DNA from: Hyphochytrium catenoides
Taxonomy: Eukaryota > Protista > Hyphochytriomycota
Direction of reading: 5' to 3'
Length of the DNA: 64,000 bases
Assembly (NCBI GenBank): GCA_900088475.1
Contig: FLMG01001670.1
Span: 1-64,000, forward strand
Shown one piece after another: positions 48,301-64,000 of the stretch. Under the pieces are notes generated by a model, which saw only the letters and a list, made by a program, of their open reading frames with translations, searched no databases and was not told where the DNA came from. The translations under genes and the position numbers were made by a program. Each line of letters begins with the position of its first letter. The first letter of the stretch is position 1.

Positions 48301-48820
48301 AGAAGAGGAAAGGAAAGAGATCATTAGAATTGTTGAGGGTCAGCGGCTGCAAACCACACACTGCGATGTCTAAATAACTGAGCTGGACGACTGTCAAAGG
48401 ATGTCGAACAGCTCTTTATGCATGTCATTGCGCGGGAAAAGTAAAGAATCATGAGAGATGGAAGAGCGCCAGATAGGCGCAAACAGCGAAAGAACTAACT
48501 CTCTCCTCTAATATTTTCTCCTCTCTTAGCGCATGGAAGATCTGTTCAACTGTGTAGGGGAGCTTAACTCTACGCTGTCGCTTGTGGAGAAGACGTTCAT
48601 TGACCGTCAGCACAAGATACTGGCGGACTTCAAGGCCAAGGAGCAAGCGAGAAAAGAAAAGAAGGAACGCGAGAGGGAGAAAAGAAGAAAGGAGCGAGAA
48701 GAAAGAGAGAGCCAGCACAAGCTTCTCGACAACGAAGACGGTTCTGCTGGCAGGAAGACAGACGATAGAGACAAGAGTCGGAGGAAAGAACGTAGTAGGC
48801 AGAAAGATGACGAGAACTAA
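44330..48820 (+). CDS. TMEM145/GPR180-family 7TM protein with signal peptide and charged C-terminal coiled coil
   Basis: Signal peptide followed by WAVVERFCF. Further motifs TSADKHG, KKRLHTT, LILVAKGWTIVRRKISSVGRVKI, YNSPPG and WNKSFPFH, then an E/K/R-rich end. Confidence 0.85.
44797..44920 (+). repeat. Intronic (AG)n microsatellite
   Basis: GA tract inside a TMEM145-like intron; it is purine-rich on the sense strand, unlike most other intronic tracts here. Confidence 0.9.
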
Positions 48821-49195: not shown

Positions 49196-52100
49196 TTAGC
49201 TAGCTTCAGGGCTTGTAACACTTACTAGCCTGCCATGAGCCATCCTTGCCACGCGATCTGCAATATCGGTCATCTCTTCTCTGGCACAGATAGCAATGAT
49301 AGTGCTTGTAGGGAAGACCTCGCGTATCAGCTGCCGAAGAGGAGGGTGTAGATTAGGGCTTTTAGGAATGATCTGCGAAGAAAGAGCTTGAAGAGAGAAG
49401 CAGCAGACAGAGAAAGAGAGAAGAGAGAGAAAGGCGAGATTTACTGCTAGAAGGCCTTAATCCGTCAGAAGCAGGCTGAAAGTGTGAAGGATGATACTGG
49501 CAGTGACAACAGGGAGACCATCACCTGCAGTAGTTCCCTGTCAGCTTCCACGCTGGAACTACCCGTAGCTAGGTCAACGAGAACGATCCGACGTTTGAGA
49601 AGAATCTGTCGAGCGACGACCAACCGAAGCTGATCACTTATGCCAAGACCAATGCTTGCAACCTGTGTTTGAATAGCAAGTTAAGTGTTTGAAAAAGAGG
49701 CAATGATTCTAAGGAACATTAGAACTGCGACAATGCCGTGGCCCACGTCCTGGATGAGGAGTGATAACTGAGGAAAGAGCTGAAAAACACAAGCCATAGA
49801 CATAACTTAATGAAAGAGAGGTCCGATACTGCTGGATGGCGGTATGCAGAGAAAGGACAAAAGATTCGTTTTTACCTATCTCTAGTTGATAGAGCCAGAA
49901 AGATAGAGAATATTGGCGCGAGCGCCGAGAAGAGTTGAAGGTTAACGGATCGAAAGCGTCGCAGCGTAGGTTGATACCTGTGCAGCGCTTTCTCCATGGA
50001 ACAAATAACTGAGCCCTACGGCACCTAAAGCCTCTGCAAGCTGACGGTCCTGGAACTCTCCAAAAGGATCAATAAGTTCGCGCAATGTCCCTACCAGGCG
50101 GCAGAGGAGGAGACAGTAGGATCAGCTTCTAAGCCCGTGTACGCTGGACTTGCGGCCCGCTTTCCCGGCGCGCACAGATGTCTTCTTCTCTGTCGTCATA
50201 TCGTCCCTCAAGTCTTTGGACATATCTCTATTGTCTACTTACCTTTCATCAGCGGGTCATACAGCGTCACAACTCCTATCGCAGTTCTCAACCTTTCCAC
50301 GCCAACATGTTGCGAGTCAATGGTATCTATGACAATTTTCCCACTTGCAAGCGGATTGATGGCTAGTAATGACATGAGCAGTGTCATTTTCCCGGCCCCC
50401 GGCGGCCCGACAAAGCACAGAAGCTCTCCCGAAGCAACGTGAAGGTTCAGATCCTGCAAACGCGACAGCGTCAGAACACCTTAAAGTGCGACCAGTAAGT
50501 TGGAGCTGGGTGTCCAGCTAACTTCCTATCCCCTACTTGAAAGAGTGCGAGGCCTTTCCCCCTAGCACCAGCCCTCATTTTTACCCATGCATCTTCAAGT
50601 GCTAGCTTCTTTAGCAGTCAGAAGCAATGTCTGATCATCCTGCCTCTCTGACTGAGCCTGTTAATTGGTGCTCAACGTACTTGACCTCTACTAGGAATCC
50701 ACTCTCTCTTCCTCCTTTTCCCACCCAGATACCTTTAGGGCAAGCCAGTCCTCTGGCTTGTATCTGAAACTAACGTCCTTGAAAGTAATATCTCCTCTGT
50801 CTGGCCAAGATGAAGGCACTGAGGAGTCAGAGAGAAGAACCCGGCGTTCCGAAGGAACTGAGTGGATCAGTTGGTAGATTTTTTGAAGACTAGTGCCCTA
50901 AAGAAGAAGAGATACAAGACTTAGTATCAACATAGAACCATCAAGCCAGACATTCACGCCTGCACGGACACCAAGAAGCCTGGAGAAGTCATCTGTCTTT
51001 ATGGTCTCAGTCAAGAGGTAAAGAATGGAAGCAGAAAAGGATGGGATCGAAAGTCCCACGAACAGTCAGTCGGATGAGAAAGATGTTGGTAACAGTAGGT
51101 CACCTCAGCCTTCACCGCTAAGAAGTACAATTAGTATTTAGCCGAGCTACCTACGTGCTCACCTGACTAGCAACAAAGCCGAGGCTTGCAATCCAGCTCT
51201 CCAGGCTCGGCTCTAAAGCCATAGCGTATACCATGACAAGGCCCAGAAGAGACGGCGACAGCCAGGAGGGCGGCCAAAATAGTGCGAGACAGGCGGCACA
51301 AAAGAGGACTACAGCGGCTACAAGCTGGGCCCGAACCTCCATCCATTCCGTACAAGAAAAGTAAGCAAAGAGACATTCGTGATGGGCATCTGTCACCTCG
51401 TGGTATCTGTAGCATAGGGATGGCCGGAATAGAGGACATAGAGGGAGTTAGGTTGCAATTCGGTAACAAGGATAGACGTCAGGGTAGGAAACATCTCAAA
51501 GATCTCTACGTCTAGCCTATTGGCATATAAGGTACTCCGTGTCCGGTCTTGCCACCCCCGCCCATGTTCGGTTCGAATCCATCGCTACAATGTCTTTTGG
51601 TCTTACCGTCTTTTGGATCTCTTCCCTTGCAGTGTTCCGAAGGCAGTAATAGTCCCCAAGCCCTCGAAAGTCCCAGCAATGGTGTCATTAAGCTCCTCAT
51701 GGGCATCATGCCCTAGCTTCTGGACCTCCCGCATTCCCAAGAGATAGGGCCGGGCGATAAGGAGGAAGTATAACGAGATAGGAAGTAGCAAAAGGGCAAG
51801 GAGCCTACGAAAAGAATGGGTCCAGAGACAATCAAAATGGCTTAGACCTCCTGCACCACTAGTAAAACCGGGACATGCCTTTGATTAATCACCTGGTAAA
51901 GACTGCAAGAACAGTTATGATAGATAGCACCGAGAAGGACGTCGCCAACACGTTTCCTAATGCAAAGGGCAGACGGAGGTCAATATTCTCCTGGTCTTCC
52001 GCCAGCACTCTTTTCACTGTCTTCGTGTTGGATCTAGAAAGGAAGGACAAGGGAGCACGAAGAGTCTTTCCGAGTGTCCGCTGATGAATCGCTTGAGAGG

Positions 52101-55100
52101 CTCTGAACCCAGCGATTTGTACGATAGACGTCCGTACAACGATGACCAGTACCGAAGAAGCTGCAAATGCTGCGTAGAACGCGTAGAAACGGAGATCTCC
52201 TTTGATGTCAAGGGAAGCAGACGACGATGACTAGATGTACGCAAGCAAAGTGCAGGTTACAACCCGGCAGAAAAAGAGCGCAGTGGTCATCCCTCCATAA
52301 CTGAATGGAAGTGAGTTCACAGGCCAAGGGCGAGGGACCTAACGCAGTAGATTGGATGCAACAAGGAGGAACAGAAGTGGCACAGGTAGGGGAATATTGG
52401 AATAAGAGGTAGAGAGATATAGTCGAAGCCTACCCAGCTGGCTAAAGTCCAATCAGACATGAAGGAGAGGATTTGCCATCCAATCTGTACTAAGATTAGG
52501 ACAATCAGGATCAAGAAGCTGCCGGCGTTGTCAAAATAGCGAAAGAGGGATGCCGAGAGGGATGGACTGTCCTTCAATAGCTCGTCGTAGTCCACTAACG
52601 TGTTCTAAGGTGTAAGGCCCAGTGCAAATGGAAAACAGACGACCGTGAGCGTTGAAGGGTGTGAGCGAATTNNNNNNNNNNGTCTTGTGCAAGATCGAGT
52701 CATTAAAAGTCTTGACCTTTCTCTCCGCTGAGGAAAAGCCTTCCGCTAGCAGATCCTCACTTGTAATCCCTACACAACAGATAGCAACGGGTGAGAGGAG
52801 GCCACCACAGAAGGAAAAGAATCCTAATGAACGTAGGTCAATCGACGCCGCCAAAGAAGCACCTAAGGAAAAGGGCAGAACAATAGCAAATCAACGAGCT
52901 TGGTACATGAGTGACTAGTTTATGGTCGTTGGCATATCCTACCAACCGTAGCCCCAGCCCAGGGCTTGCTAATAGACTCCAGGAATAGCGAATCATCGTC
53001 ATGCATGCTGACCGAGGTGGCAGCGGAGTGGAAGGAGGACAGACTCTCTCCTGAACCCCTCCTCTCCTTCTCCTTCGCTTTATCCTCTGCTAAGCTTATA
53101 TTTGAAGGGAGATCGTATTCTGGTAGCTTCAAAGCTTTTGCTGATATATTCCGGACGGTTACGTCGCCCTTCTCTGAGACCGTTATTGTCCTGTCCAACT
53201 GTCAAGAAAATGAGCCTTCCTATTCGTTCCAGCTGTAGTACGTTGGCTCTTCACTTCATTTGTCCCTTTGCTTCCTTCTTCGCTACCCCCGTTAGTGACT
53301 AATTTTCAAGGATGCTTCTCCTTTCCATGACCTCCAAACGTTAAAACCTACCCCTTTGTCGGGGAGGAAAGCTAGTTGCATCTGCCTTTGCCCTCCCACT
53401 ATATTCCCACGACTCCCTCTGTTTGAAGTACACTCTTACCATTGGATGCTTGGCGAGCTCTCTTATACTAGATGCTAGCATCACCGTCCTGCCTCTCTTT
53501 ACTAATAGTTCCACCAGGGCATCTTTTACTAGCGCCAGAGATAGCCGAAGAGACATCGCTCTGAATGGGGAGTCCAGGACAACCAAGTGGGCTTCTGAGT
53601 AGCAGCACCGAGCGAGGGCAATGCGTGCTTGAAGACTTGCCGGAGCCCTCGAAGTAACCTACGGCCAAGGGTAGACATGTGAGAAGGATACAGCAAGAGC
53701 AAAGCAGCAAGTTCATGTCTCTAGTTAGCTCTATTCCTCATGCTCTTCGCCGACTCCTAGCCATACCAGGGTGGCGTCCCCTTCTTTCATAACCGCTAGA
53801 TCTTCCAGCAGATGGCAGGCAGCGAGCACCCTGTTATACTTTGGGATGTCATATAGCCGGCCAAATAATATATTCTCACGGATACTGCGACGCTAAAACA
53901 GCAAAAATGGGTTGAACAAGGACACCGTTAGAGCGCAGCTCCACTGTGTAGAAAAGAGGAGACGGTAGAGAAGGGGAACTGGGACGTGATAGAAGGACTT
54001 CCACAGTTTATCCTCTTGCACTGAACGAGGTAGCCTTGGAGACTATGAGGAGGATGCTGGCAGAAGATCTGTTGGTCAGCTACCTGCAACCAAGGTTCCC
54101 CAGACCCGTAGGCCACGTCTCCTGCAAGGAACATTCTTCCTTTCTCCTTTCTATAAAGACCAGCTAACGCTCTGCACAGTCCAGACTTGGCTTGACTCTT
54201 GTCTTCCTCTGAGCGTATGAGAACAAACTCTCCTCTTCCTACGCATAGACTGACAGCACTAAGAGCCACCCTAGGCAACTTAGATCCTGACTCTTTCGTC
54301 ACAATGTCCTTGGGGTCCACGAAATCTGCAAGAGATCTATTACTTAGGGAGAGACTTGATGACAGGGTATAAGAATAAAAAGGTATGGAATCAGAGCCAT
54401 CCTATGCACTTTGCAAATTGAACGCATTTGCCAAAGGACAAGGAAAAGTTCAGCTGGACAAGAAGAGATTTGAGGGTTGCGGTTTAGCCATTCTTACCTC
54501 CACCATTGATGCAAAGAAGGATAGTAGAGGGAATAGAGCCTGGACCATACTCCTCTGCTCCTTGAGGAGTATCCACGTCCTTTTCTTCCAAATCCAGAAA
54601 AGAAAGCAGACGCGAGAGAGAGACCTTGCACAGAATGATGGAGCTGATATACGTAGGAAGGCTTCGGAGGGGAGTCTGCAGACGTCAAAAGAGCAGTTCG
54701 CTTTGTGAGTCGTCTCCCACACAGGACCCAAGGAGTTTATTAACAGAAGCCGCAGAAATATGGCTCGATTGTTTAGAGCTTTAGACAACGATACCCTGAG
54801 GAGACTCAGCCCAGGCAGCAGCGAGCTTAATAGATTTGTCTTAAGAGTGACTTGCCAGCCAGACTCATTAGGAATCACCAGGACACAGAGGAAAAGACAG
54901 CAGGACAGAGGAAATGACAACACGACAGTGATGCTTACCAAGAATCCCCAAGCCTTACCTGGATCATCTGCAATAACAGGATGGCAGTAAACACCTTAGG
55001 AGGCGATAGAGCTTTCCCTTGCACCAAAGCATAAAAGCCGAAAGTGGCAAGAATGACTAGGAACGGGATGCTCCACAGGAGGATGATATTGACAGCCCCG

Positions 55101-57176
55101 TACATGAGGTAGCTGGAAATCTAGGAAGAGGTGACCGAAAGAGAGAAGGAAAGAATTGTAAAACCCCCAGTTTTGAAGCGTAAACAGTTCGAAGAAGAAC
55201 CACGGCAACACTTCCCACTCTGAGTTCAAACACAGAAAGCGGCAGTCCACTAACGATGGTTGTCAGCCTGCCCAGTAGGGAACAAAGAGACTTTTGTATT
55301 GCAACGAGTACGATTTTGGGCGAGGTGACGGGGAGGTAGGCCAGTTGCAGCCCAATATCCATCAAAATCGAGTGATCAGTTGTCAAACAACGGCCTGATA
55401 AAGAGAAAAGGCACGAGGTACGTCGCTTTTTTTAGGCTCCTCACCTCCTTGGCCTCTGTCGCTCTAGCTGTTCTTTGAACATACAGGGTGGATTTCTCCT
55501 CCCAGGCGTTGAACTTGATAATAGGAAGAGCATCGAGCAGCTTGGAAATTGCCGCTAGCCTTTGGCGTGAGCTTTCCGTCAGGCTCTGATAGACGCGACA
55601 CTAAAGATTTGAGAGCCAGAACCAGTATTACGGGGAGGAAGACGGAGTTGGAAGCTCATTAGAAAGAGGCAAAGACCCTAAATAAGCAAGAGGCTAAGGA
55701 AAGAAAAAAGAGGTAGAGGGTCCTATTGCACGACTACAGCTCGACTCTTAACCAAGACTGAAATGCCATTGGGCAGAGGAACTTTTGATCAAGCAAAAAG
55801 AGCATAATACGGTACACCGCAGGGGAAGAGGCCCAAGTGACGAAGCATCAACTACGGCACCTGTCTGACGCTGATCCAGTTGTTCACAATGAGAAGTAAG
55901 ACATTTAACGCCAGCCCTAACAACGCTGCGGGCCCGAACATGAGGCAAAGCGTGATGGAGATGGCGAGAGAGAGAAGAGGAAGTGCCCAAAGCTGATGTA
56001 AGGCGAAGAGGCAGTTGATGACATTTCCCACGTCAACAGTGAAAAGNNNNNNNNNNNNNNNNNNNNNNNNNNNNNNNNNNNNNNNNNNNNNNNTGAAGGT
56101 ATAGAGCGGCTTGCCAGATATCGAACTCCATACTAAGGGCAAGAAGATCTGGAAGAGGTAGGCCGTCGTAGGACAGAGTGAAAGAGTTCAAAAGATGCTG
56201 TCCCACCTTCGTCTCTCTGGCGGTCACTGAGAGGTTGAGGACTTTAGAGTAAAGTAGACCCTTCAGCCCGCCCGTCACCTCCATCATCTGCAGCTGCGAC
56301 TGATGGAAAAAGTGTATAAAGAAGAAGGTTTTTAGAAGACGAGAGAGAAAGAGAGAGAATAAGAGCAATAGGAGTTGGCTTGTCCGTGGTAGAAAGTCCA
56401 GGAACGTAGGGATGGCAAGTGCGGATAAAGATGAAGGAGAAGACAAGTAGGTAGAGGACACGGAGTGTGCCTCGAGGAAAGGAGAGCCAATCCAAGAGAG
56501 TGACGTGGTTCCGTTCGCATGACGGGAAGTGCTGGCTGGCTCCTCTCTATCACCGCGCGAGTATCTTCTTTCGCCCACTTGAACGAGAAGAAAGACAGAA
56601 AGAGGAGCGACTAGGTCCATCAGAAGGGCGACAGCGAGGAAGAGCCCAAGGCGACGGTAACTCCTCGCATTGACTTCCGATATGACGGTAAAAAGAGACG
56701 AGGACGATCCTTCTTTGGCTCTCTCTTTCTCCCAAGCTCTGCTATATCGCCCCGTCGCTATCTTGGACTGAGCTGATGAAGGGAGTGACCAAAGGTTGAA
56801 CTGCCGGAGCACAGGAGGCAGACCCCGTACGGCATTCCTTCCTATGTTTTGTTGGCGCGCTTATGAGAGAGAGAGCATTAGTAAGCAAAGAAGATAGCGA
56901 GAAAGTCTTGATGGACGAGAAGACTGATGAAGCGATAAGGTGGAGCTGGCAGAGTTAGGAGACGGATGTACTATGCCATCACCTACCTCTAGCCGCTCTT
57001 CTGATCAAAGGCCAGGCCCAGGTAAAGGTCAGCCTTGACCAAAGAGGTGCAGACTCGTCGGGACTCTTGGGCTTGTTTGTGACATGAGCGCTGTCAGAGA
57101 GGCCAAAAGTGCTATAGTGGGGAGGAGAAGAGGAGGAACCAGGGCCAGGAGAGGGTAGCAGGGGAGCAGTGGCCAT
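49196..57176 (-). CDS. ABCC/MRP-family full-length ABC protein (short form, no TMD0) with both NBDs degenerate
   Basis: Lasso motif SPDESAPLWSRLTFTWAWPLIRRA, then TMD1 and NBD1 (GDVAY..EPWLQ, SIRENILFG, RIALAR). TMD2 and NBD2 follow (WPDRGDITFKDVSFRY, GPPGAGKM, LRTAIG, DPFGEF). Ends GRLVSVTSPEAS*. N-gaps at 52672-52681 and 56047-56093 appear intronic. Confidence 0.9.
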
Positions 57177-57984
57177 GATGGACTACGGAGGAAGAGACCG
57201 AAAGAGACAAGGGTAGCGAGAGAGAGGGAGAGAGAAAGAGAGAGAAGGAGAGAGAGAAGACAGTGACCGTGAGAGCCTTAAGAACGATGGCCTTTCCTCT
57301 TCTTTCTCTGACTTCAACTTGCCGCTAGTAACTCCAGTCAAGCCTGGACTCTGACCCACGCAGAATCCTTCCTTCGATCTCACCAAATGGCGTTCTGACT
57401 GAGACGCCAACCCGTCAGAGGATGTCCCGCAGGCTGCCAAAGGTGTGAGCACTGATGCGCGTGAGGGTGGGGTAGGTAGGAAGAGGAAAAGAGGGAGACA
57501 GAAAGAGAGAGAGAAGCATGGAACGGAAGAGCGCGCGAGAGACAGAGACAGAGAGAGAGAAAGAGAGAGAGAAAGACAGAAGGAAGAGATATTTGTTTCT
57601 TGGTTTTCTACTACAAACTGCATCTTCCATTATCCTATGATCGGTCTTGATATCTCTCCGCAAGAATCCCTAATGCTTTGCGCCTCTCTGTCTCTCAGTT
57701 CTCGTATCTCCTGGTTTGAGTACCCATGTCCTGCATCCTTTCACCTCTGCAATTCACCAGGAGCGACGGGGTTTCGAGAGGAAGAAGAAGAAGAGGCACG
57801 CGAAGAGAGCAGCGCGAGAGAGACTCTATCCCGAGACAATAGAGAGGAATAGAGGCGAGTCTAGCAAGTGAAGTCGGTCGAGGGACAGGGTATCGAAGTT
57901 GGAGGGAGAAGGGAGATATTGCGACAGCGGAAGCCTAGACTCGCTTTCTTGCTGAGAGAAAAAGAGTCTCTGTGCCTCTAAACC

Positions 57985-60900
57985 ATGAGCAAGCTCCCTC
58001 CCCTTTCGGTCGGTAGCAGAAATGCGGAGCGCTCAGACCTTTCTCCAGCCAAGAAAAGTGGTCCAAGCGCGCAGGTAGTAGCGATCGATGCTAATTTTAT
58101 GTGATACTGATGGACTCGATCGATGGCAGTATCCCTAGGAGGAGGGTGGCAATGATGAGGTATAGAAGAGGGGAAACTGACAGACAGAAGCTTGGGGTTG
58201 ATTTGTGTCAAGCAGCGGCACACAGAGAAAGAGAGCATCATCCGAGTAGCTGTCCTGACCACCTCCTCACGATTTGACGGGCAGGATGTTGATCTACACT
58301 CACGCTTTAAAGTCTATACTCCAAGGGTGCGCAGCCGGTCCTTTCACGTCCTTGGAGGAAAGGAGGGAGGGAAAGAAAGTGCTGGAGCAGCTGTCCAATC
58401 TGAACGCAATCTTCTCTCTGAGTCAAAGCCTGGAGGAACATTAGGAGGCGGATTGCACGCTATTGACGTCAGGGAGCACTCAGACCGATCATCCTTCCGC
58501 TCAGAAGAAGCGGATGAGAGCGACTCTAGCGATAGCGAAGGGGATCAGGACCACCTCTCCCTTCTGGATCCTTACTTCGATCTTACAACCTCAAGACTCA
58601 AAAAGATCTTCTTTCTCTTTGACCAGGACGGTGAGAACACAGCTATGAATATGAGTTCGTTTTCCAATTGCGTCCCATTGTGCTCTAGTTCGTGGTTCTC
58701 TTTCACTTGTCTAAGGATGACGATGAACGGCTTTCAGGTCGTAGATGTTGCCATCCTAGTCGATTCTTGGCTGCTTATCTGTCTAGCCATACCTCTCTGC
58801 TGCAAATGGCAAGGGGCCTTTCTCTCTCTCTTTAATGAGCTTCCTGCCCTCGTTTTCATCCTGCGACGCCCACAGATGACGGTGTTGTCAGCTATGAGAG
58901 TTTCCGGCGTGGGCTTAGCGCCATGGGAATTGGAACGGAGGACGATGACTCTTTCCGTGCCCTTATAAGGAATGTTGATACCGACAACAGCGGTGGCATT
59001 ACATACCAAGAGTTTGAGAGTGCGGTGCAGATGATAAAGATGGCAGACCTATTCAAGCAAGAGACAATAGAGCAGATGACTGACAACTATTCTATACCAC
59101 TCTCCCCTATATATGTGGTGGACTACTCGCCGGAGAAGGTAAGAGAAAGGGTGATTGATGGAAGGCAGAGAAGCAGAAGAGGGAATAATAGCATACAGCT
59201 TTGGAGAAGGTGGAAGGGGTTATTAAGCCGAGAGATTGCAGACACCAAAGGCGTAAGACTGAATGTAGTGTACAGATTTCATGCCACTAGAAAACAGGAG
59301 GCGACATAGATACCTAGGACCTACGAGCAATTGACGTTCACAAAGTCCTAATTCTTACTTGTGCCTTCAGATTCGTTTTCAGGATAACGTCCGTGACCTT
59401 CGCCGCTTCTTCTTCTCTCCACTTCCTTCCTGGGCGACAGTTCGCTGGGTGAACATGGAAGGAATTGACCCTCTAAATTTGAAGCGCTTAGCTATCAGGT
59501 ATAGACTGCATCCTCTGGCAGTTGAAGATGTGCTGAAGGACGAAAGGCAGAGGCCCAAATTTGAGATCTACGAAGATCATAACTTTCTGGTATGGGCATA
59601 GAGCCAATTCTCACCCTGTCCGGGAGTCATGACATCCCTCTCTGGCTGAGTTTATATGACATCCCTCTCTGGCCAAGTTTATGTCCACCACGGGTCGACC
59701 TGCAGCGCCGCGCTTGAGCTGACTCTAGCAATGTTTTCGTTCCTGATTAGCCCTTCCCTATATCCAGGGTGGTCTTCCAATCCTGAGATCTCAAGCCCTT
59801 CTCCCACCGGCTCTTCTTTTGTTGAAATGCCACAGGTTGTACCCTTGCTGAAGATGGGTAAGCGCAGCCATGGGCAGCCCTTTTTGGGCACGATAAAGAA
59901 AGAGATGTCCCACAGAGGAGGCAGCAAAAAGGTTATCTCGACAATTAAGATTTCAACTTGGTCACAAAGCATCTAGTTCCCTTTTGCTAGTGGTTCTCGC
60001 TTTGGCACTCCTCTCTGGTATCGGAGGTAGCCGCATTTCCTCTTGGCAGAACACCTATTTTTTTCACCTTCTTCGGTCCATCCTCTTTAAATCTACCCGC
60101 TTGTGTCCTTCGCCTACCTAATCTGGTCGTGGGTTAGTCCTCTGATACTTTTTTGCGTAAAACAGTCACTGTCCACTAGGCATCCTTTCACAGAGTTCCA
60201 TGAAGAATTCCAAGGCGATAAGGAGCCTGCGTTAGACTTTGTAGTGCAAATGTCTCAGGTTTCCTTATTCATGTTGCCCAAGATGGTGGTCACTGTGACG
60301 GATGAAGAGGATCCGGTGCTGAGAATAGGAATGCACAAGCGGCTAGACACTACTTATGCGAAGGGTAAGGGTTAAAGAAGAGATCCTCCTGAACTGCCTT
60401 CTTATCGTGGATATGCTTACTGCTTCTTAAATGCTCTAGTCTTCCCCATTGTGAATTAAATACTTGAATCTGAAAGTCCCGCGCTTAACTTCTATCCTTG
60501 GTTACGACGTGGCGGTTCCTCATCTCATTAAGCCACAGACAGACCATAACTCTGGGTAATGCCTTCATAAAATTTCATGGCCAAACCCGTCCTTTCAATT
60601 TATTGTTCCCTATGGGTCTTCATTTTGCTTCGTTCTGTGTCCTTCCATCCTTGCCTCGTCTTTCGCCGCGGTGTCTCCTCTAATTGATTGAATGACGCCG
60701 TTTCTTTCTGCCGGCAGTCCGTCAAAATGACGTTCAGTTTCTTATTTACGCCATCCTGGATACGCTGGTGGACGAGCTGGTCCCCATCGTAGTGGCCTTC
60801 CAGGTCGCTGTGACGAAGATGGAGCGAGAACTTCATTCTCTTAGAAGGATTGAAGATTTTAAGCTAAACAGGGTGCAGAGTCTGAAGAGACAGCTGGTAC

Positions 60901-61908
60901 AGGTGCACAGAGCCATCAAACCGATGAGGGAAGTGGTCAGGAACCTTATTGAGGACGAGGTCTTCAACGTACGTGATGCAAAGACGTATTTGGATTCAGC
61001 GCGGATGGCGAGTTCTCCGCGTTTGCCATTCATAAAGTTCCTGGCCTAGAGTTTCATCTTGTCTAGAACAAGCTTTTGTTGTCCGAATAATGCCCCGCTC
61101 TTCATTACTTACCCCCTTGGACCGTACCTTCTTTGGGCGTTATTGTGAGTTTTTTTAGCCACGTGCTAACGAATGATCGCTGTCTAGTTGGTCCATTCTT
61201 GGGGTGATTGAAGACTGCTAACTATGCTCTTGTCTGTGGATGGTTGCTCTTCTTCTCACACCGAGCCTTGTCTGACGACCCTATTCTCTCCTTTAATCTT
61301 TTCTCCTCGTTCACGGTAGAAACATGTCACAATGTACATGAGAGATGTGCACGATCACCTTGTACAGATGTTGGAGGATGCAGAATACGTAATAGAGAAT
61401 TGCAGGAACATAAGCGAAGAGTTCCATAATCTTCGGTCTCAGCGACAGAACGAGGTGATGTATATCCTCACCCTGGTCACGACCATGTTCATACCAGCAC
61501 AATTTCTAACGGTAAGGACCATACAGACAGGGAACAGGGGATTCTCTTCGATGAACATTCTGTACTTGCCTATTATGTGTGTTATTATGTGTGGGAAGGT
61601 TAGCGGCGTTAGGAGAGAGAAAGGGTTAAACCTCATCGCGACCGTGGCTTCTAGCTTCACCTGTGGGAGTGTAAATCGGCTTACATCTGCTATCTTATGT
61701 TTTCTCCTTATGCGTGACTCTCCCTTCCACTTCAATCGTCTCATTCTGGCTACGCCGCTGCTTACCTTCCTAGGGTGTTTATGGGATGAACTTTGACAAT
61801 ATGCCCGAGCTACACTACGAGTATGCATATTACGTTTGGTGGGTCATTGTACTCTGCTTTTTCCTCTCTCTCTTCTTCTACTTTCGGCTGGTCAAGCGAT
61901 GGATCTAG
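57985..61908 (+). CDS. CorA-family Mg2+/divalent cation channel with N-terminal EF-hand pair
   Basis: EF loops DQDDDGVVSYES and DTDNSGGITYQE. CorA motifs RWVNMEG, YRLHPLAVEDVL...[63 protein letters not shown] and a second TM; ends KRWI*. Confidence 0.95.
59629..59682 (+). repeat. 27-bp tandem duplication in a CorA intron
   Basis: ATGACATCCCTCTCTGGC(TG/CA)AGTTTAT x2. Confidence 0.9.
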
Positions 61909-62030: not shown

Positions 62031-64000
62031 TTGCTTGTGGCTCCGCTGCGAGGTCGCTGTTCTGGCGGCCTGTTCTCAGCATCCCTCAAATACTTGTACA
62101 GGATAATATTCCTGTTCTCTTCTGCCACATCCTTTGGAGTCTTTCCTCTATTGTCCTGTTGCCTAAGATTTGCTCCATACTCGAGCAATACGTCTACGAT
62201 CTGTTGGAGGTTGAGACGGGCTGGAAAGGATCCGAAAACGGAAGTTAGACAACGTACAGAAAGAAGATCAAGACACACGAGGCGTGGGATGAGTCGCAAC
62301 GAGAATACCTAAGGGGATAAGTCTAAGAGGGTGAAGCGCCTTGGTAGCGCTTACGCAGGGTTTAATTGTCGAGTAGGGAGCCAAAGAAGAGACACAAAGG
62401 AGCTAGCGTGTTACAGATCTGTAGCCGTCTCAAGAGTCTGGATCCTTACCAGCTGCATGAAGAGGAGAGGTCCCAAAGTTATCCTGCACGTCCACGTTGG
62501 CCTGCTTCGCTACGAGGACCTTGACAGAGTTAGCAGCTTGGGCTTCCACAGCACTAAGGAGAGGAGTTTGCCCCATATGATTGCACTGCTCAATCGGAGC
62601 ATTTTCAATTTTCAACATCTCGGATAGCAGATCGTCATCTCCTCTTAGCGCTGCGTAGTGAAGGGCGGTATTCCCATTACCGGGGTCTACCTCACTTAGG
62701 AGAAGATCTGTCTTTTCCTAAGATTTAGGATGTGTTCAACATATGCATTAGAATAATGAAAGCGAAGCATTTGGATTATGAGAGCACGCTGAGAGAGGCA
62801 GGTAGTACGCGGAGGAGAGTTAATTAAGAGCGAGAGTTTGACTGAACATACAAGCAGAAGCAAGGCGACATCTGCCCAACCATCCATGACGCTGATTATC
62901 AAAACGTTTCTTCCTTTCTTGTCCCTTATCAACCTTGGGCTGCCGTAGCTGTCAAACGATATGAGTCAGGAAATAGGGTGAGCAGTCGTGTTATGGAAGA
63001 CAACCTCGCAGGCACCCAACCCTTCGTCACAGGTTCAAATACTCTTCACTCTTCCCTTTCCTTCATTCTTTCTTCAGTTTCTCCTTTCCTATCCCCTCTT
63101 GCCGTAGCATGTTCCTCCCCTGACATTATTTGAATCGTACTCGTGCAGCATGGTGCTGATCTTATCATATTCACCACATTGAACTGCCGCCAAAAAGTCT
63201 GCCTTTGAAGCTTCAGTGTGAGGGTACTTTCGGGCCTTTCCTTTGAAGATCTAAGGGCACGAGAGGGTGAGAGGAACATGGAAGATGGGAGACGCAGACA
63301 ACTTTGCTGCTCAAGAGAACAAAGAGAAAGGGGAAAGGCGGCAAACATTCTTGTACTCTGACCTGAGAGAGACCGAGTAGCGAAGGCACGAGAAGTATGT
63401 ATATAGAGCAAGCACGCTGAACCCAAGTCAAAGGAGGAATGAGAGCGTAAGCCAATAGACCTGCCAGGTCCTCCAGAGTCTGAAGATGATTGTCTCCCTC
63501 TTGAAGGGAGGTGGCTGAATGATCTCATTGACCAATAGTTGCCTGAAGGTAGAGCGATTGAGTCCGTGACGTAAGTATTTCTTCTCCCCGTCCTAGCATC
63601 AGTGAACCCTACCTAACATTTTGCTCGATCCCTTTGGCTGTCAGCTCTTCTAGACACGTCTGGCAAAGGAAATAAGTGAGCTCGTTGTGCAAGTAGGCAG
63701 CTAACTCCTTCTCGCAAAAGTGGCAGAGAGTTGGTGTCTCTTCATCTCGCTGCTCCGCCCATCGACGAGCTCTTCGTATGAGGAGATTGGTGTAGTACTC
63801 CCCCAAAGTATCTGTCACTATCCTTCTGTGCGCCTTCTTCGCTGCTCGAGCCTTTCTTTGAAATGCCCGTTTAAGTCTTAAGCGAGAAGGCAGAGTCGGG
63901 CAGAAGACGTTGCATAAGAAAGACTCTTTTTCTTTAGATGGAGGCAAACCATTGACGTACCTTCCATCCTTTACCACATTAATAGGGTTTTGCCCGTTGT
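62015..64000 (-). CDS. Ankyrin-repeat protein with upstream Cys/His motif; 5' end outside the window
   Basis: Ankyrin repeats GRNVLIISV, GNTALHYAALRG, GQTPLLSAV, GTSPLHAAARLN and GKTPKDVA. Upstream CHFCEKELAAYLHNELTYFLCQTC is B-box-like. Confidence 0.88.

Follow-up and report, generated by a model that had tools for sequence, protein, structure and literature searches.

An ABCC-type gene of Hyphochytrium catenoides with altered motifs at both ATPase sites: a probable non-hydrolyzing derivative

We analyzed an ABCC-type gene on contig FLMG01001670.1 of the stramenopile Hyphochytrium catenoides (assembly GCA_900088475.1), using as the window the whole 64,000-nucleotide stretch from position 1 to position 64,000 of the forward strand. 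The gene lies on the minus strand and spans 57176 to 49196, with an ATG at 57176 and a TAA at 49198-49196, as determined by six-frame translation and reading of the DNA. Its assembled reading frame is intact, the catalytic motifs are lost from both nucleotide-binding domains (NBDs), and its two alleles carry a signature of constraint. In current models of ABC exporters, the transport cycle is taken to be driven by one competent ATP site or more, and even the non-pumping members CFTR and SUR keep one. The explanation that we consider probable is that the gene encodes a selected, non-hydrolyzing ABCC derivative whose NBD2 may still bind nucleotide. The loss of hydrolysis is deduced from the motifs, and a role as channel, facilitator, sensor, or scaffold is speculative.

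Motif loss in the two nucleotide-binding domains

The initial annotation had quoted a series of aberrant motif strings within a range that extends from NBD1 to the stop codon; the actual gene is larger and begins at 57176. Every quoted string was present on the minus strand, and each lies in frame within an exon that has GT-AG borders. For the motif calls, both NBDs were aligned with MAFFT to 10 ABCC homologs, all of which are canonical at the compared columns. In this alignment, the NBD1 Walker A motif, 'G-x--VGSGKSS' in the homologs, is replaced by 'RSEEDKSQAKSG', with all of the glycines gone and two residues inserted. NBD1 has also lost the Trp of its A-loop, and Gly stands in place of the Q-loop Gln. 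Another sequence, shorter by three residues, occupies the position of the 'LSGGQ' signature ('SRA---PASLQAR'). Walker B, 'VLDS', keeps the Asp, which is followed by Ser, and the H-loop His is changed to Ser. Having lost both the P-loop and the A-loop, NBD1 probably binds no nucleotide. The exon that carries the signature region of NBD1 (exon c) gave phmmer matches to the NBD1 of SUR1 and CFTR (E value, 2e-5), its top PDB sequence matches were SUR1, SUR2, and CFTR, and a separate look-up returned 'ABC_tran fragment'. Queried singly, and thus only as unspliced pieces, the three NBD1 exons had no Pfam match; tblastn matched them to homolog NBD1 with an E value of 3e-13.

The Walker A sequence of NBD2 is 'GPPGAGKM', with Met in place of Ser/Thr. 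In the same domain, the Q-loop has Tyr instead of Gln ('VTLYDP'), the signature is 'GISDQ', the catalytic Glu of Walker B is changed to Leu ('LVDLAT') and the D-loop is altered, and the H-loop reads 'ICAR' (His to Ala). This domain retains the A-loop Tyr, the G-x-x-G-x-G-K loop with the Walker A Lys, and the Walker B Asp. Its Walker A exon matches Pfam ABC_tran with 41.5 bits (cut-off, 25), and its PDB matches are to ABCB and ABCC proteins about equally. ATP binding without hydrolysis is possible at NBD2, as judged from the retained residues.

Hydrolysis requires the Walker A Ser/Thr and the Q-loop Gln, which serve Mg2+, the Walker B Glu as the base, the H-loop His, and the signature of the partner domain, which closes the site. 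All five elements (Walker A, Q-loop, Walker B, H-loop, and partner signature) are altered at both composite sites. Because the required residues are absent at both, a cycle of ATP hydrolysis appears very unlikely at either site. The protein is an ABCC member by its architecture and nearest relatives, and its motifs are not those of a competent ABC ATPase. The earlier claim that both ATPase sites are destroyed holds for the hydrolysis residues, which are absent at both composite sites; the two NBDs are not equally dead, however, given what NBD2 retains.

It is conceivable that the transporter is still energized, either through slow, non-canonical turnover of ATP bound at NBD2 or through binding alone, which would drive a single power stroke. 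The retained A-loop Tyr, Walker A loop, and Walker B Asp of NBD2 speak for this, as do the reported ability of ATP binding to drive the stroke and the reported tolerance of one degenerate site (PMC7205462, PMC7544095). However, NBD2 is devoid at once of its Walker A Ser/Thr, its Q-loop Gln, its catalytic Glu, and its H-loop His, the NBD1 signature that would close this site is deleted, and the second site is devoid of any P-loop, so that we regard an energized transporter as quite improbable. We know of no ABC exporter that works with such combined losses, and our literature searches surfaced none.

An artifact of misassembly, read errors, or wrong exon choice, hiding a true transcript with canonical NBDs, could be suspected, since the gene contains two scaffold gaps and was assembled from a heterozygous diploid. 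This explanation is largely refuted and appears extremely improbable. The losses are spread over seven separate exons, and the NBD exons were reproduced by independent DNA contigs of three runs, several with 0 differences; the NBD motif losses are therefore not read errors. The initial annotation had raised the prospect of alternative exons restoring the canonical motifs, and none exist at the locus: in a regular-expression scan of 48-58.5 kb, canonical strings for Walker A, the signature, and Walker B-DE were lacking from every minus-strand frame, and tblastn with homolog NBD queries found no second NBD-like match in the same interval. The spacing of the homologs leaves no room for a missing NBD exon. 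Of the gaps, one conceals 178 letters in the linker, and the other lies in the first transmembrane domain (TMD1).

Gene model, family placement, and assembly gaps

The gene model comprises at least 20 exons, of which 20 are assembled, with ~1411 assembled codons. GT-AG borders were found in all 17 of the fully assembled introns, which are 80-315 nt in length. H. catenoides has been reported to be diploid, with a mean intron length of 208 bp (PMC5795050), and both values fit the data for this locus. The exons, all on the minus strand, are as follows (TM, transmembrane helix).

57176-56987, minus strand: exon 1, start codon and ABCC N-terminal 'lasso' region; ATG, donor GTAGGT, tblastn match to the N terminus of an Achlya ABCC
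56859-56207, minus strand: exon 2, TM1-TM2 and the beginning of TM3; open frame, 3' end uncertain, following junction in gap 56047-56093
56046-55861, minus strand: TM3-TM4 exon; 29.8-bit homolog-profile match, donor GTGCCG, acceptor and ~8 codons inside gap 56047-56093
55600-55422, 55112-54959, and 54675-54498, minus strand: three exons completing TMD1; GT-AG, in frame, collinear with homologs, the 55422/55112 junction picked by homology
54325-54084, minus strand: NBD1 exon a, Walker A destroyed (RSEEDKSQAKS) and Q-loop Gln changed to Gly; alignment
53892-53767, minus strand: NBD1 exon b, conserved SIRENILFG block; alignment
53658-53440, minus strand: NBD1 exon c, signature lost with a three-residue deletion, Walker B VLDS, H-loop Ser; phmmer, alignment, and DNA contigs
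53198-52943, minus strand: end of NBD1 and beginning of the linker (one RRGS site)
52769-52682, minus strand: linker exon entering assembly gap 52672-52681; DNA contigs bridging the gap, frame open at the loose end
52604-52434, 52230-51893, 51804-51607, 51406-51163, and 50897-50733, minus strand: five TMD2 exons up to the start of NBD2; GT-AG and frame, Pfam ABC_membrane on 52230-51895
50453-50243, minus strand: NBD2 exon, Walker A GPPGAGKM and Q-loop VTLYDP; Pfam ABC_tran (41.5 bits), PDB matches, and alignment
50090-49978, minus strand: NBD2 exon bearing the DPFGEF block; alignment
49662-49525, minus strand: NBD2 exon, signature GISDQ, Walker B LVDLAT (Glu to Leu), D-loop altered; alignment
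49330-49196, minus strand: last exon, H-loop ICAR (His to Ala), stop TAA at 49198-49196; alignment

The initial assignment to the ABCC type was borne out by tblastn and by the MAFFT alignment, in which the protein is collinear with ABCC homologs in a TMD-NBD-TMD-NBD order. The full domain order is lasso region, TMD1, NBD1, linker, TMD2, and NBD2. There is no TMD0, which makes this a 'short' ABCC; only ~45 residues precede the lasso motif, with no additional TM bundle, and a pattern of 6+6 TM helices is retained in the hydropathy profile. The Pfam ABC_membrane match on TMD2 exon 52230-51895 scored 35.7 bits. The top matches are named MRP1 or ABC subfamily C and come from stramenopiles, and the best whole-gene scores were obtained with Chromulina nebulosa (EukProt), Achlya hypogyna OQR92921.1, and Saprolegnia diclina XP_008605150.1. 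Among 1.84 billion representative proteins queried with a TMD2 exon, the nearest are 30-36% identical, the best reaching 36%. A rhizosphere metagenome run sharing 9% of the words yielded no match along the locus.

The ten N at 52672-52681 represent ~178 real letters: contigs of two DNA runs bridge this gap, joining 52668 to 52682. A loose end in a contig of a third run extends the open frame of the linker exon by at least 10 codons inside the gap, and the exon that follows has its own acceptor at 52604; therefore, the gap sits in the linker between NBD1 and TMD2 and touches no NBD motif. It conceals up to ~55 linker codons and one donor site. At the other gap, 56047-56093, an acceptor and ~8 codons of the TM3 exon are concealed. 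In a profile of 22 homologs, the open reading frame before this gap and the exon after it meet end to end at profile position 220; nothing large is missing there, the junction itself being unread.

Alongside these placements, we observed that the frame before gap 56047-56093 runs past its likely donor (AAG/GTGGGA, 56207/56206) as '..VGQHLLNSFTLS..'. This segment (56094-56260) resembles the start of the post-gap exon 55861-56046 ('LFTVDV..'), the corresponding DNA being CTCTTTCACT versus CTTTTCACT. The resemblance could reflect an intron born by tandem duplication of a piece of the exon, a duplicate exon that has decayed, or a fault in the assembly at this place.

Two further junctions required a choice. 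The TMD1 junction at 55113-55444 is ambiguous, with 'TACCTC' on both the donor and the acceptor sides, and donors at 55444, 55421, and 55415 all keep the frame open. Donor GTGAGG (55444) and donor GTGCCT after 'YL' were dropped, and homolog spacing was reproduced only by donor 55421 with acceptor 55113. In the linker, an acceptor at 52862, which gave a long hydrophobic insert, was rejected; the density of variants there looks intron-like. One haplotype turns the AG (minus strand) at 52863-52864 into TA, creating a new AG one base downstream. Acceptor 52769 (AG at 52771/52770) was adopted because this allelic shift would break the frame from 52862.

Integrity and constraint

The exons had been described initially as open, with kept GT-AG junctions, and this extends to the larger gene: there are 0 stops or frameshifts in the ~1411 codons, and all of the assembled splice sites are intact. 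Stops or frameshifts in the TMD exons had been named as a possible objection, and the assembled TMD exons contain none. For a break hidden in the N gaps, the answer is partial: the linker frame is open for at least 10 codons into 52672-52681, which lies in the linker, and the rest of the 178 letters is unread.

The DNA runs contain two haplotypes, seen as contigs at about half depth that differ by 1-5%, consistent with a diploid. The allelic analysis covers the 40 of 124 variant places and the 12 of 28 indels that were displayed. Exons hold 20 of these 40 variants, 15 synonymous and 5 non-synonymous, a synonymous excess with a p value of 2e-6 to 4e-5 if 0.70-0.75 of neutral changes are taken to be non-synonymous. 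None of the 14 indel or joint places listed falls in coding sequence. The 15:5 excess and the location of indels outside exons therefore indicate constraint during the divergence of the two alleles. In the TMD2 exons, 10 allelic changes are synonymous versus 1 non-synonymous. Across 53298-53841, which includes NBD1 exons b and c, single full-depth contigs showed 0 differences, and both alleles thus most likely carry the same degenerate motifs in these two exons.

Divergence from other species differs among domains. The ratio of model-to-homolog identity to identity among the homologs is 0.97 for TMD1, 0.71 for NBD1, 0.72 for TMD2, and 0.67 for NBD2. By this measure, conservation of TMD1 equals that seen among ordinary ABCCs; the NBDs and TMD2 evolved faster. 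If the excess change in the NBDs were neutral, a rough estimate predicts ~7-10 stops; 0 were seen.

These data bear on whether the gene could be a pseudogene, either young or unexpressed, derived from an ABCC duplicate that no longer functions but has yet to acquire stops or frameshifts. Such a history would fit the unusual divergence of the NBDs and TMD2, the missing orthologue and the absence of the protein from the protein collections searched, the lack of a listed RNA run for the gene, and a small-sample ratio of non-synonymous to synonymous polymorphism (pN/pS) that is not clearly low in the NBD exons alone. It would have to be reconciled, however, with the absence of stops, frameshifts, and broken splice sites from 1411 codons and 17 fully assembled introns, with the synonymous excess and the confinement of indels to non-coding sequence, with the stops expected under neutrality, and with a TMD1 as conserved as in working ABCCs; we consider it unlikely. 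Overall, the assembled sequence shows none of the lesions of a pseudogene, and pN/pS among the displayed variants is not near 1. Integrity, the allelic pattern, the divergence pattern, and the absence of alternative canonical exons favor a maintained gene over a pseudogene.

Several points weigh against a selected, non-hydrolyzing protein. Two junctions lie inside gaps (56047-56093 and 52672-52681), and a frame break there is conceivable. The NBD and linker exons alone hold ~5 synonymous versus 3-4 non-synonymous changes, too few to show constraint on the NBDs, and the allelic argument is weakened by the fact that only about a third of the variants are visible (40/124; indels, 12/28). The sequencing-run search listed no RNA run for the gene, and a search open to every kind of run gave DNA-type runs only; absence from the listing is not absence of RNA, and expression may be low. 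Among the 1.84 billion representatives, the TMD2 exon query found neither an orthologue above 36% identity nor the protein itself, and a metagenome scan with NBD1 exon a returned only four bacterial ABC ATPases, each matched through a single peptide word.

Comparison with known ABC systems and possible function

The closest known counterparts are the short ABCC or MRP-type exporters of stramenopiles (Achlya, Saprolegnia, and Chromulina). The H. catenoides protein shares with them the domain order, the lasso, the 6+6 TM helices, a TMD1 identity in the normal range, and the structural blocks SIRENILFG, WP.RG..F, and DPF.E. Unlike these proteins, which own canonical NBD2 motifs and an ATP-binding NBD1, it has none intact, and identity is ~24-32% by domain.

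Losses of the catalytic Glu, the H-loop His, and signature residues are also found in TAP1/2, TmrAB, ABCB11, and Pdr5, at a site that only binds ATP. The second site of those transporters is canonical and drives the cycle (PMC7544095, PMC7205462, PMC8421411). One site is degenerate there, whereas both are in the H. catenoides protein.

CFTR (ABCC7) is an ABCC whose TMDs form an ATP-gated anion channel. It resembles the H. catenoides protein in that its site 1 is non-catalytic and its linker carries sites of the protein kinase A (PKA) type, of which the H. catenoides linker has one. That linker comprises ~95 assembled residues plus up to ~55 inside the gap, with its single RRGS (PKA-type) site at 53040-53060; around this site (minus strand), the sequence after NBD1 is acidic and serine rich. 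CFTR differs in its long R domain with many sites, and the chemistry of its NBD dimer is absent from the H. catenoides protein. Gating of CFTR still depends on ATP bound at both sites and on its hydrolysis at site 2 (PMC5626490).

SUR1 and SUR2 (ABCC8 and ABCC9), subunits of ATP-sensitive potassium (KATP) channels, are ABCCs that regulate a channel instead of transporting. They likewise have a degenerate site 1 and are top PDB matches of NBD1 exon c. SUR has a TMD0 and a consensus site 2, whereas the H. catenoides protein has neither, TMD0 being absent and NBD2 degenerate. The consensus site 2 of SUR binds and hydrolyzes MgATP (PMC5790381). The statement in the initial annotation that CFTR and SUR keep one competent site agrees with the literature (PMC5626490, PMC5790381). 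Literature searches for a characterized ABCC with both sites dead surfaced only systems in which one site is degenerate. To our knowledge, no such ABCC has been established.

We propose that the gene of this diploid stramenopile is intact, is maintained by selection, and encodes a short, ABCC-type full transporter. NBD1, devoid of the P-loop glycines, the A-loop aromatic residue, the Q-loop Gln, the signature, and the H-loop His, would survive as a structural domain. Missing from NBD2 are the Ser/Thr that coordinates Mg, the Gln of the Q-loop, the catalytic Glu, and the His of the H-loop, and its partner signature, in NBD1, is deleted; NBD2 could at most bind nucleotide (ATP or ADP) as a ligand. 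Such a protein would be without an ATP-driven cycle of NBD sandwich formation. The conserved TMD part would then probably act independently of ATP or in a nucleotide-sensing manner, as a channel or facilitator, as a sensor, or by partnering or scaffolding another membrane protein. That the membrane part carries the function is suggested by the conservation of TMD1, the intact TM pattern, and selection on the reading frame.

The chances seem about even that this is the first full-length protein of the ABC exporter type to be kept by selection after losing hydrolysis at both sites, its TMDs working without the ATP cycle and possibly with NBD2 as a nucleotide sensor. If so, it would show what an exporter fold does without an ATP cycle, offer structural work a natural 'locked' scaffold, and extend the idea of the pseudoenzyme to ABC transporters. 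At present this is a single gene that appears lineage restricted, and its weight would depend on experiment.

On the plus strand, at 58923-61796, lies a gene with Pfam matches to EF-hand_1 and CorA (58 bits), encoding an EF-hand, CorA-like Mg2+ channel and divergent from the ABCC start. SUR holds Kir6 through TMD0. The ABCC protein could act as a SUR-like regulatory subunit of this neighbor, the two genes diverging from a shared upstream region. The head-to-head placement relative to the ABCC start at 57176 and the SUR1, SUR2, and CFTR matches of NBD1 exon c point this way, yet adjacency is the sole link between the genes, gene-dense genomes contain many divergent pairs, the ABCC protein is without a TMD0, and SUR keeps a competent Mg-nucleotide site where the H. 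catenoides protein has none. Such a pairing is highly improbable.

On the other side, a convergent plus-strand neighbor ends in a very Lys/Glu/Arg-rich tail (48530-48820) without a Pfam match, and only ~375 bases separate its stop codon from that of the ABCC gene. The 5' region of the ABCC gene (57190-57640) contains many low-complexity CT/GA runs, which read as 'SLSLSL' frames and recur in introns (49390-49440).

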